Source of the DNA: Stylophora pistillata
Lineage: Eukaryota
Assembly: GCF_002571385.2 (NCBI RefSeq)
Contig: NW_019218136.1
Span: 102,854-166,853 of the forward strand
DNA length: 64,000 bases
Reading direction: 5' to 3'
The notes beneath the pieces were generated by a model. That model saw nothing but the letters and a program-made list of their open reading frames with translations, was not told where the DNA came from and did no database searches. Of the stretch, positions 11,717-64,000 are shown piece by piece (positions within the stretch are counted from its first letter, which is position 1; each line of letters starts with the position of its first letter). Both the position numbers and the translations under genes were made by a program.

Positions 11717-13710
11717 CTGCAATGTACAGTGATCTTGGTGTTGCCTGACTGCTGCTGCCATCGTTGCACCTGGCCAATAAGATCGATTAAACCAGTCCCT
11801 GATTCTGGGGATCCTGAGTCGGGCCATCCAGTGTAGTGATATTGTCGAACAACTCGCGATGCACTTTCCTGAAATATTGAGAAAAGTATTATGTACGTTT
11901 AATAAAGGCTGTTAACAGATATTTTAAGGCAGCATGTGATCGCTCTGAACAAGACTAGGAATGTCTGAGGCCATTTCCGAGTTACCTTAGCCTCTCTTTC
12001 AAACGAGGCCTGGTGCTCAACAATTTGTATTAAAATAAGATTAATTTGCATTTAAATGATAACCTATAATCATATGAAAAGACCTGGACTCGCTTTGAAA
12101 ATAGGTCAAAGCCTATTCGGAAATGGGCTGTTGGTACGCGTTATTGTTGTTGTTGTTATTTTCATTGTCGTGCTTGTATAACCCTAAAAACCTCGTCTGC
12201 TCGATATTACATGTAAATGTTGGTTGGGGCACCAGTTGATCTCCCTAGAATTTTAGACCAAGTGCATATCTCCCTATAATACATAAAACTCCTGACTAAT
12301 TTCCTAAAAAATTCAACCACATTTCAGGTACGTTTACTATGTTACTCTGTTTAATATAAACAGACAGTTACTATACATTCGCTGAATAGTCACCAGAACT
12401 AACCTTGGTATGGGTGAGTTTCATTTCTCTCATCGTGTAGTCTTCATAGGTCATCTCACTTGTCTTTTCCACTACCAAAGTTCCAATGTGCGTGGGCTTC
12501 TCTGCAGGCCAGTAATGGTGTACTTTAACCTGTATACATACAGATTTAGCTTTACAGATCGATAAAATTCAGCTAAAGTTCAACTACACAGTCAGAACTC
12601 TTACGGATTTATTCTCCTTTAAGCGATGACTCTAAAGGCCAAGCCTCTGTGATAACTTATTACAGGTTAGGATCAGTATTCAGATTTGATACGTGGTCTT
12701 AAGTCTTTATTCCCTACAAACGTAACGAGGAAATGGATGCATCTATCAAATCGATGGTAATTAATTAATTACGTTTACATCAACTTCGAAGGAGTGATGG
12801 CTGCGAAGCGATCAGTCACACACCGCTTCGGCGAAGTGGACCGACAAACTTTTATAGTTTAACACGTATCAGAGGTCTTACTGCACATTAGGAGTCCCCA
12901 TTTATAAGGAAACAAAGCTTTTTTCGAGATCTCTCGGAAGAGAGTTGCTCACGAAAGTCAACTGGTAGAAATACTTATTCATGCAAGATCGACATAAAAG
13001 GGATCACCAAAACTCNNNNNNNNNNNNNNNNNNNNNNNNNNNNNNNNNNNNNNNNNNNNNNNNNNNNNNNNNNNNNNNNNNNNNNNNNNNNNNNNNNNNN
13101 NNNNNNNNNNNNNNNNNNNNNNNNNNNNNNNNNNNNNNNNNNNNNNNNNNNNNNNNNNNNNNNNNNNNNNNNNNNNNNNNNNNNNNNNNNNNNNNNNNNN
13201 NNNNNNNNNNNNNNNNNNNAGTATTTGCCTTTTATTTACCAATGAAATGCAAATGACATCTTTATTTACCCTAGTAAAAGATAACCATCCATAACATAGA
13301 TTGGTAACCTCATCCTAGACTAGTGCATTGATTGATTGCTTTATTGATAAATTGTCGGTTGATTGAGCATACCTTGCCACCTTCTGTTTCCTTGGATAAC
13401 ATGACTATGGTGGAAGATTCTTGTTCCCAGATCATTCGCCAAAAGTCTGGAATAGTGTCAGGTATGGGTGCCTGAGTTGCAATAAATGCTCTCCTGGCCA
13501 TGTAACCATCAATGAAGTTAGCATTGATGTAGTCGGAGCCTTCCACGCCAGAGATTACACTCAGTTTAACCCGGGTTTCATCATAAGGAAACGCATTTGG
13601 ATAACGATTCTTGGTCACGTTGCAGGCCATGTTAGCAGCCTGAGTTGTGAACTGAGAAGCGCTGAAGCAGCGACCTAACCGAATGAACTCCTCATCCATC
13701 TCACTTTGGC
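11717..13710 (-). CDS. PTP D2 domain of gene B (3 exons visible, truncated at VHCS)
   Basis: [49 protein letters not shown]|GT. No continuing exon recognised. Confidence 0.9.
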
Positions 13711-61700: not shown

Positions 61701-64000
61701 ATGAAGAAAGGCTGCATAACTTAAAAAAAAAACTTCCTTGAACATCATTAAATCTAGGATGCATTTACATGCTGCGATATCATTTATATCGAAATATCAA
61801 TGTTTCAAAACATTAACGTAAAGACAGAAAACAGTCACTTCCCATCGAGGCAAATTCTCCATGCAAAACATAAATAAGACCAGCAGTAAGTATATCGGTA
61901 AATAGTTTATAAACAGTCGGAATATTTTAAGGTAATAATTAGTATTTATTCAAATAAGCTTAAAGTTTAAGCAATTTTCGGAGAATATCTCGGTAAAAAT
62001 AGACGAGCTTATACCTAGAAAGCAATTAATTCGATTAACTCTTGCTGCATTAACGCGGATTAGCAGATTTAAGAGAAGAAATAACACTAGAAAACGAAAC
62101 ATTCGAGTTAAATTACAATATCGAAATATTTTGCTTAAGAAAATCAACTGAAACACTGAATTTCAACAAATTCAACTTGAAAAGATCCTTCTCTCGTACT
62201 CAAGAGAATTCAACTCGATTACATTGTAAATTTCGGGAGAATTAAACGGATAAAATTGATACGCAGAGGCCAAAGCTTCTTAATTCAAATTAAACGAGGT
62301 TGATTTCCGCTTCCACATCTGTTAAAAAAAATCTGTCTTCGAATGATGAAAAATGATTTTTACCTCCTGGGATAGATAAATAAAACAGTACCAGTGACAA
62401 GACGAAGAACCGATGAAAAAGACGTTTTCTGAAGGTACAAATTCTTACAAGACGTTCGTCCATGCTTAGGAAGCATAGTTTGATCAAAAGGAAGATGAAA
62501 GAATCGACCGCAACTTAGATAATTATTGCTAGAGTTCGAAAGGCAGTCACAACAAGGTTTCTATATAACACACGTTCTGATTGGTTAAAACCGCATGCTT
62601 TATCAGAGTACGGATACACAGAGTAACGGTGTCACGCGTCGACCGATTTGTGCAGTGGCTCCCCATTTCCCAGATGTATTCCCTTAATTTTTTTTCTTTT
62701 TTGTGCTTATTCGTAAGTGCAGAATAATGAATGGATTAATGAGGGAATAGTTTGGGGCCATCAGATCATATTTCAATTGCTATTAAAAGTTATCCACGTC
62801 AAACGAAGTCTACTGCCACTAAAACCACTATAACAATTACTGCCACTGAGTACAAGTACTACTGCTGCTGCCGCTACTTCAACTACTACTACTTCCACTA
62901 CTGCTAGTACAGTAAGCCAAAGTCGATAGGGTTTTTTTACCAAAATATCAACCCCTAATAAAACGATTCTATGAACAGTGGTATCTGTACCCTTATTGAT
63001 AACAGCAATTTAGCCCATCGGTTTAGCCCTCATCAATTTAGCGACATTACTGCCACATGCGGAAAGGAATGATAGTGTTTATACATGCACGACGGTTATT
63101 TGAAGTCACTTACACTGAACATTAACCGTGGAAGCGTAAGAGATATCTCTTCCAACTCTGTTTTACGCTTCACATTTGTATTTGCCACCGTTTATTCTGT
63201 TCACTTTCGTTATTGTCAGCTGTTCCTGGCTTGGTGACAAAGTGATCCTGGAGCCGTTACGTAAAGGATTTCCATTCTTGGTCCATGATATGATCGGGGC
63301 TGGATTTCCAGTGGCATTACAATACAAAGTTACGTCATGACCTTCTTCTGTTGTGATATTGCAAGGATGAGTTGCGATCTCAGGTTTATCTGAAAATAAA
63401 TATGGCATTTGTGCAAGGTTGATTAAAAAAAAAGATTAGTTACATGTACATGTAATAATAACTCTTCTGAGCCTGTTGTGAAGGTGTATTTGAAAGTTCT
63501 CACCCTGTCTTTTGTTTAATTTATTGCTGACAATTAGGGGAAATATACTCACAGTACTAAACCCTACTTATGTGTTAGTGGAAATAAGGCCCGTACGAGA
63601 ATTGAATACGTGACCTCTGCGATACCAGTGCGGCGCTCTACAAACTGAGTTAACGAGCCAACTGAGAACTAGTCATTATGTTGATTCGAATTAAACCCGT
63701 TGAAGTGATAAATCAATGAATTTCTTTTTAATTTTCTTTTTTCAGGCCTTGTTTCCACTACTACATAAATAGATTTTATTACTGCAAGGATCGCTTTCAC
63801 ACATTTCATGCAACCACAGTGCACATATATGATTCTTATATTCAAATTCATTGATAGTAATTGTTGAGCAGTTTTCAAGGACGATATCTATTGAGAGACG
63901 AGACGTCTTCTTCAGCTCCAATGGTAAAAATGTATCTAATGAGTGTTTCAAATTCGTTACTTAAGAGAAAGGCCCAGTTTAAAACTTTATCGTATACCTT
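52332..64000 (-). CDS. Gene C: Ig/FN3 type I membrane receptor with short tyrosine-motif tail and no phosphatase; 5' part lies outside the window; one Ig exon has a stop
   Basis: Exons: end of an exon at 63998-64000; Ig 63114-63389 (TAA 63163-63165), 61222-61500, 60287-60562, 59183-59458, 58571-58846; FN3 57709-58023, 55703-56002; RPTP-type membrane-proximal domain 55337-55457, 54932-55241, 54458-54500; Ig 53914-54180, 53336-53620; terminal TM+tail exon 52332-52705. All phases join in frame. Confidence 0.85.
56272..56953. mobile_element. Non-autonomous hairpin element (190-bp palindrome + segment bounded by short inverted repeats)
   Basis: AACAATTGGTTCATACGTCAGC...GCTGACGTATGAACCAATTGTT (56272-56461); TTATAACAT (56462) ... 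ATGTTATAA (56953). Confidence 0.7.
58420..64000. repeat. Direct segmental duplication of gene B region ~27255-36350 (exons and introns), with only one copy of the two-exon unit
   Basis: Exon pairs 27410/58571, 31728/59183, 32530/60287, 33484/61222, 35428/63114. Introns align (e.g. 33770-35400 with 61505-63100), including the microsatellite and the tRNA-derived element. Confidence 0.93.
63548..63850 (-). mobile_element. Paralogous copy of the tRNA-derived element at the equivalent intron position in gene C
   Basis: Same element and same flanking intron sequence as 35865-36185. Confidence 0.75.

Follow-up and report, generated by a model that had tools for sequence, protein, structure and literature searches.

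Within a 64,000-nucleotide stretch of a 345-kb Stylophora pistillata scaffold (C352:102854-166853, here called the window, from a genome of 397.6 Mb), two neighbouring minus-strand genes, B and C, were delineated from stop-free frames and Pfam matches, and a further 60 kb past the window end were also read. We consider it likely that B and C are adjacent members of a modular receptor cluster of the immunoglobulin (Ig) superfamily that evolves by birth and death and by exon shuffling, and whose members carry one of two types of cytoplasmic end. Members appear to share a common stock of parts, namely a signal peptide, a V-set tip domain without cysteines, an array of I-set domains with one exon each, fibronectin type III (FN3) domains and a juxtamembrane furin-type site. 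B is predicted to end in a transmembrane (TM) segment and a LAR-type tandem protein tyrosine phosphatase (PTP), and C, like a third paralogue outside the window (gene D), in two Ig domains, a TM segment and a tail with five tyrosines. The anatomy of these genes, their homology, the sizes of the families to which their parts belong and their conservation in the Pocilloporidae are documented below. Searches were run exon by exon rather than on joined spliced models; duplications were identified by self-BLAST, domains by Pfam, tip structure by AlphaFold2 (AF2) and Foldseek, and PTP relatives by PDB matches. The window contains two runs of N, at 1877-2177 and 13016-13219, and four single Ns.

A duplication shared by genes B and C

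An earlier, sequence-only reading held that B and C share Ig exons together with their introns and then diverge, and this is borne out by self-BLAST. Two same-strand pairs of blocks are alike in both exons and introns: 27250-28407 against 58420-59566 (77% identity) and 32105-36348 against 59893-64000 (81% identity). Within the window the minus-strand duplication covers 27250-36348 on the B side and 58420-64000 on the C side; the whole B block is 27250-47101, and that of C goes on for about 9.4 kb past the window, to C352 position 176277. Reading beyond 64000, a check which the earlier reading had proposed, adds five Ig exons, the tip, an upstream exon, a signal-peptide exon and about 1.3 kb of promoter to the homology, and gives C a V-type tip exon of its own (C352:170731-171060). 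The shared block thereby comprises promoter, signal-peptide exon, tip and about ten one-exon I-set Ig domains at 77-94% nucleotide identity, introns included. Ig exons of B and C are 70-90% identical in amino acids, and the V exon is the best conserved stretch of the duplication at about 93-94% nucleotide identity. The copies differ in the number of a two-exon Ig cassette, present in three tandem copies in B (28032-32805; self-BLAST) and once in C, and in the exon that follows the tip. B and C would be the products of a segmental duplication (about 15-20 kb, promoter to Ig14) and of later gain and loss of Ig exons.

The same similarity could in principle reflect a misassembled second haplotype of B at 58-64 kb, and the assembly does contain collapsed or duplicated stretches at gaps (816-1876 equals 2196-3256, and 7799-8156 equals 8158-8516). 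However, the identity is only 77-89% with many indels, the Ig exon numbers (three cassettes versus one) and the exon after the tip differ, and the unique 3' halves of both genes are joined to the repeated part gap-free, no run of N lying between 22334 and 64000. Because 77-81% identity goes together with different exon numbers, we regard the block as a paralogue; misassembly is very improbable and was rejected on the level of divergence.

Anatomy of gene B

The first exon of B (46041-46100) encodes the start methionine (46100) and a signal peptide, ends in a phase-1 donor and matches the N-terminus of the Pocillopora verrucosa protein XP_066015791 (67%). It is followed by the tip exon (43632-43961), which according to paralogue alignment, AF2 and Foldseek encodes a cysteine-less V-set Ig domain with tryptophan in place of the B-strand cysteine, and by an array of 15 I-set Ig exons (26045-43142; Pfam I-set/Ig_3 and exon boundaries), mostly of 276 nucleotides and of phase 1-1. 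The Ig10 exon (31093-30818) is interrupted by an in-frame TAG at 30996-30998, where paralogous exons read GAG. Between 18469 and 25524, FN3 exons matched by Pfam fn3 lie at 25524-25210, 24145-23915, 20545-20318, 20005-19589 and 18777-18469. Translations place a juxtamembrane domain (FPVGDG..., with the basic site RRKHR) and the TM exon at 16773-18148, in the same order as in a paralogue on contig C332. A trinucleotide microsatellite (16950-17100) adjoins the TM exon, and one intron of B holds a minus-strand open reading frame (ORF) with a THAP domain (22697-23098, E 8e-13) and a plus-strand acidic ORF (21556-21900), which are probably a transposon-derived insertion.

B had been read as ending in two PTP domains, D1 and D2, which is accurate for D1 and in part for D2. 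D1 is complete, with three exons (14015-16288; PF00102 positions 1-75, 73-173 and 173-234) that carry all catalytic motifs, namely KNRY, WPD, HCSAGxGRTG and the Q-loop QVEEQY. D2 (11695-13789, PF00102) extends only over Pfam positions 1-177, in exons 13789-13397, 12568-12404 and 11898-11740, the last of which ends in ...ITVHC at a good donor. The N gap at 13016-13219 sits between D2 exon 1 (donor after GGK) and exon 2 (acceptor before VKVHHYWP), and order, strand and frame are consistent across it because the Pfam coordinates abut (1-81, 81-128) and both junctions are in phase 0. D2 is D1-like, since NRY and WPD are retained. The top PDB matches of the PTP exons are 6kr4, 2fh7 and 1lar (E 1e-69 to 1e-62), PTPRF and PTPRS being closest.

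Anatomy of gene C and the state of its Ig array

Self-BLAST and exon boundaries place the C Ig exons within the window between 58420 and 64000 (Ig10 58846-58571, Ig9 59458-59183, Ig8 60562-60287, Ig7 about 61500-61222, Ig6 63389-63114 and the start of Ig5). The homology that had been claimed for them holds, but an intact reading frame does not: Ig6 contains an in-frame TAA at 63163-63165 where B reads AAA, and the first Ig exon, directly after the tip and just past the window, is frameshifted by a 1-nucleotide deletion that leaves 281 nucleotides. The remaining nine array exons and the tip are open and have good splice sites. Downstream, an FN3 exon (FN3a, 57709-58023) is phase-compatible with the Ig10 donor, and Pfam and RefSeq mapping identify, within 54932-56012, a second FN3 exon (FN3b, 56012-55701), a linker exon (55455-55333) and a juxtamembrane domain X (55243-54932) with the furin-type site RKRR. 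A membrane-proximal Ig pair follows at 53334-54181 (54181-53915 and 53624-53334; Pfam I-set/Ig_3 and RefSeq mapping). The predicted ending in a TM segment and a tail with four tyrosine motifs was recovered by translation and RefSeq mapping in the last exon (52332-52706), which encodes the TM segment IAWSCVVFMLLVLIGVLIWWL and, up to 52335, a tail whose five tyrosines lie in YMEL, YQSL, YYNV and EEIYEEI, before the stop codon TAA at 52334-52332. A trinucleotide microsatellite (52260-52310) directly follows this stop codon.

The only RefSeq model found for C, XP_022800122.1 (622 amino acids), matches 57877-52335 at 97-100%. It begins at an internal methionine in FN3a (57877) and includes none of the Ig-array exons, and is itself incomplete, because its coding sequence opens inside an FN3 domain without a signal peptide.

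These observations raise the alternative that the C array is a decaying remnant, such that only the part from FN3 to the tail works as a shorter receptor, or that the whole gene is a pseudogene, the likeness to B then being a by-product of recent tandem duplication. We regard this as possible, though short of probable. It accords with the two frame-breaking lesions in the array, with a RefSeq coding sequence that opens inside FN3a, and with a higher ratio of nonsynonymous to synonymous substitution rates (dN/dS) in the array (0.54) than in the 3' part (0.34). On the other hand, that coding sequence lacks a signal peptide and so comes from an incomplete model, nine other array exons and the tip of C are open with good splice sites, and one Ig exon is likewise broken in B and one in D; such exons, all of phase 1-1, may simply be skipped. 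The lesions of B, C and D, each of which has a decayed Ig exon, may be skipped pseudo-exons, alleles or errors.

The V-set tip and the five-tyrosine tail

No Pfam family matched the V tip. An AF2 model built with 16 paralogues reached a pLDDT of 95.7, and its best Foldseek matches were the V domains of PD-L1, nectins (nectin D1) and TIGIT (TM-scores 0.76-0.85); in the tip alignment tryptophan and leucine occupy the pin-cysteine positions. The tips of B and C are about 84-86% identical in amino acids and represent one tip type, that of D being 47-53% identical to both.

At least 27 copies of the tip and at least 28 of the tail exon are present in the genome, and the two occur together only on the C352 contig. 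Two membrane-proximal Ig domains, a TM segment and a tail with conserved motifs, all present in C, define a group of scleractinian receptors automatically named sidekick-like, hemicentin-like, neuropilin or PTPRF-like, whose cassette is carried by both C and D. It recurs in S. pistillata XP_022783168.1, XP_022805776.1 and PFX15917.1, in P. verrucosa XP_066015791 and XP_066015799, and in Oculina and Desmophyllum models; XP_022783168.1 maps exon by exon, at 96-99%, to contig C55. Most of these relatives attach the cassette to FN3 or discoidin outer parts, whereas only the genes of this contig add a V tip and an Ig array. A search with the tail gave 62 matches among cluster representatives, and the named ones that were looked up were all scleractinian. 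The five tyrosines are retained in 79-89% of about 70 tails, with YMEL, EYQSL, GYYN and EEIYEEI kept family-wide. Literature searches on coral allorecognition and on the accessions returned no paper describing this Ig-Ig-TM-five-tyrosine tail family.

The YMEL and YQSL motifs of C lie 14 residues apart, and because this YxxL-x14-YxxL spacing is too wide the tail contains no canonical immunoreceptor tyrosine-based activation motif (ITAM). Nor does it contain an inhibitory counterpart (ITIM) of the form (S/I/V/L)xYxx(I/V/L), and the C TM segment lacks a charged residue. The tail does have YxN and YEEI motifs, and established SH2 specificities point to Grb2-type and Src-type binding of such motifs; binding of Src-type and Grb2-type SH2 domains by the C tail is thus plausible on motif grounds. 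A language-model look-alike search placed the tail near the transmembrane adaptors SCIMP, GAPT and LST1 (score 0.85), a match that serves only as a lead.

A cluster of related genes on the scaffold

Gene D is encoded on the plus strand, 30-60 kb past the window. Its parts run in the order tip (twice), Ig array, FN3, juxtamembrane domain, Ig-Ig, TM and tail, and is collinear with C, in inverted orientation, over the whole length of C at 77-87% nucleotide identity, so the array and the tail of C formed one gene when they were copied. One of its Ig exons is frameshifted. The D V-tip exon occurs in tandem copies on the plus strand (C352:199508-199891 and 200161-200553, equivalent to L007:2655-3038 and 3308-3700), the first of which appears to have lost the usual donor context. 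With further fragments and five signal-peptide exons, the cluster contains at least six genes or remnants.

A degenerate PTP fragment (C352:192337-192507, plus strand) lies 25.5 kb past the window, downstream of an Ig/FN3 fragment, E. It is 42% identical to D1 exon 2 of B and may be what is left of a second, decayed member of the phosphatase type. In the stretch from C to the next member, a 660-residue open frame on the minus strand (C352:180258-182237, equivalent to L005:3405-5384) ends in a weak GIY-YIG match and may represent a Penelope-like retroelement. On another contig, C332:338336-366222 contains a B-like gene (tip, about seven Ig domains, FN3, TM and PTP) head-to-head with an inverted copy of its own outer part; this contig has many gaps and stops after D2 exon 1, and the gene next to the B-like one, on the minus strand, showed neither a tail nor a PTP end as far as the large gaps. 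In P. verrucosa, the RefSeq protein XP_066015791 (2253 amino acids) has the full tail-type architecture, signal peptide and tip included.

Between the arrays, the synonymous rate (dS) is 0.17 with dN/dS 0.54 for B and C, and 0.16 with dN/dS 0.49 for B and D; for the 3' halves of C and D the values are 0.33 and 0.34. These ratios indicate purifying selection on the 3' half of C and relaxed constraint on the arrays (0.49-0.54). In the V tip, B against C gives a dN/dS of 1.45, calculated from few changes. Ig-array domains are 75-92% alike among S. pistillata paralogues compared with 62-79% to Pocillopora proteins, whereas for the membrane-proximal cassette the distance is the same within a species as between species. 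This is consistent with an older divergence of the tail-type genes and more recent duplication or conversion of the arrays. As the exons are symmetrical, of phase 1-1, they can be duplicated, converted and allowed to decay, and can probably be skipped.

Several points weigh against the modular cluster as we have described it. The last D2 exon of B (Pfam 177-234) was found neither downstream in the window, nor in the 10 kb below it, nor on the contig by tblastn, motif scan and genome-wide Pfam scan; the single N at 11348 possibly marks a scaffold join. Over 13223-15453, B matches the end of contig C332 at 98.4% identity, the remainder of the two genes being 74-82% identical, and the switch from low to high identity falls in gap-free sequence on C352; the stretch reflects either recent conversion or an assembly problem at one of the two places. 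With D2 incomplete and this identity to the C332 end, there may be an assembly problem at the 3' end of B. Word-index protein searches recovered the partial model of C and the full-length tail-type models of Pocillopora; for B and D they gave no RefSeq model, and a PTP-type relative with this tip was likewise not among the results, although their length and word limits mean that a blank says little. The exon joins proposed for B, and the join of the C array to its tail, rest on strand, order, phase and homology, and the lesions of B, C and D could be assembly errors or the alleles of one haplotype.

Comparison with known receptors and the question of pairing

In its tandem D1-D2, its outer part of Ig and FN3 domains and its single TM segment, B resembles the LAR family (PTPRF, PTPRS, PTPRD and Drosophila Lar). 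LAR is cleaved at a site in its juxtamembrane domain, and B likewise has a basic site in that domain. It differs in having a V-set tip, 15 I-set exons and about 4-5 FN3 domains, where LAR has three Ig and 4-8 FN3 domains, and in its D1-like D2 with the last exon not found. Two other contigs, C310 and C200, carry more conventional LAR-like genes.

Vertebrate paired receptors (KIR, LILR, SIRP, PIR, CD300 and CEACAM) form clusters of paralogues whose outer parts are almost identical but whose signalling ends differ, and they evolve via duplication, conversion and frequent pseudogenes. Their inhibitory partner acts through SHP phosphatases bound to ITIMs, and their activating partner through a charged TM residue and an ITAM adaptor. 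B and C are likewise clustered genes with similar outer parts and different cytoplasmic ends, but B carries the phosphatase itself, and C has a tyrosine tail of its own with no canonical ITAM or ITIM.

The Alr genes of Hydractinia form a cnidarian Ig superfamily cluster with an N-terminal V-set domain that lacks the Cys-Trp-Cys pin, I-set domains, tyrosine motifs in the tail and many pseudogenes (PMC9546547). The coral tip, with tryptophan and leucine at the cysteine positions, is likewise a V-set domain without the cysteine pin, which is a resemblance in domain type only. Alr proteins differ in having 2-3 Ig domains and no phosphatase member (PMC9546547).

The earlier reading had proposed that B and C form a paired-receptor system. 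Its structural half stands, in that a near-identical outer part is joined to two cytoplasmic modules; its functional half found no support in this analysis, given the lack of a canonical ITAM, of an ITIM and of a charged TM residue, the array lesions and the partial RefSeq model. A paired function of the two genes would be plausible. At cell contacts, tip and array may bind ligand, the C tail would be phosphorylated and recruit SH2 proteins, and B would dephosphorylate substrates at the same contacts. In its strict form, a true paired switch, the shared V tip would bind the same ligand or each other's, and the C tail would recruit Src-type or SH2 signalling that the B phosphatase opposes, for instance in self/non-self recognition or adhesion. 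We think such a switch unlikely. It would agree with the single tip type of B and C (84% amino acid identity, D being different), with the V exon as the best conserved part of the duplication, with a D1 that carries all catalytic motifs, with strongly conserved tail tyrosines, with the adjacent, same-strand position and homologous promoters of the two genes and, at the level of a lead, with the adaptor look-alikes of the tail. Against it stand the frameshift of C in the Ig exon right after the tip and the TAA in Ig6, a C RefSeq model without any Ig-array exon, the TAG in Ig10 and incomplete D2 of B, and the lack of a canonical ITAM or ITIM and of a charged TM residue. Nor do B and C look like a dedicated two-gene switch, because tail and tip are present in so many copies that meet only on this contig.

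Stylophora is a classical model for tissue compatibility reactions. A more specific version would make B and C a new type of coral paired receptor, with one V-tip specificity, in which the built-in LAR-type phosphatase of B and the Src/Grb2-type tail of C are opposed at cell contacts, possibly in tissue compatibility; we hold this to be slightly more doubtful still. Membership in a modular cluster with two kinds of cytoplasmic end is the reading we prefer.

Neighbouring genes and other features of the window

Gene A (window 1146-9931, plus strand) is convergent to B; its exons comprise one for an Ig domain and at least eight for FN3 domains, several of the latter being tandem duplicates (4266-8605). 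In the window no TM or cytoplasmic exon of A is visible ahead of the end of B. Gene A resembles the 3' half of fragment E beyond the window.

The direct duplicates 816-1876 and 2196-3256 are 99.5% identical and flank the 301-N gap, and a second direct pair, 7799-8156 and 8158-8516 (a 359-nucleotide copy, 98.3% identical), flanks the single N at 8157. Both pairs are most likely gap-closing artefacts, so that single Ns in this assembly can be contig joins.

The region between B and C contains a plus-strand retroelement of the long interspersed nuclear element type, recognised by its reverse transcriptase (49218-51911; Pfam RVT_1). A short inverted-repeat element, probably a miniature inverted-repeat transposable element, lies in B and C introns at 35869-36049, 44836-45184 and 63587-63716 and has more than 100 copies in the genome. 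Trinucleotide microsatellites at 35036-35245 and 62776-63009 occupy homologous introns of B and C.

Significance

To our knowledge, the genes for allorecognition and contact signalling in corals have not been identified. The cluster described here provides concrete candidates, in which a rapidly evolving Ig outer part with a V tip is coupled with either a phosphatase or a conserved, putative phosphotyrosine docking tail. It also documents a scleractinian-wide cassette with a five-tyrosine tail, previously undescribed according to the literature searches made. If B and C do pair, theirs would be the first arrangement of the paired type with a phosphatase built into one of the partners. Even without pairing, the cluster illustrates how symmetrical exons of one domain each let receptor families swap their outer parts and their signalling ends.

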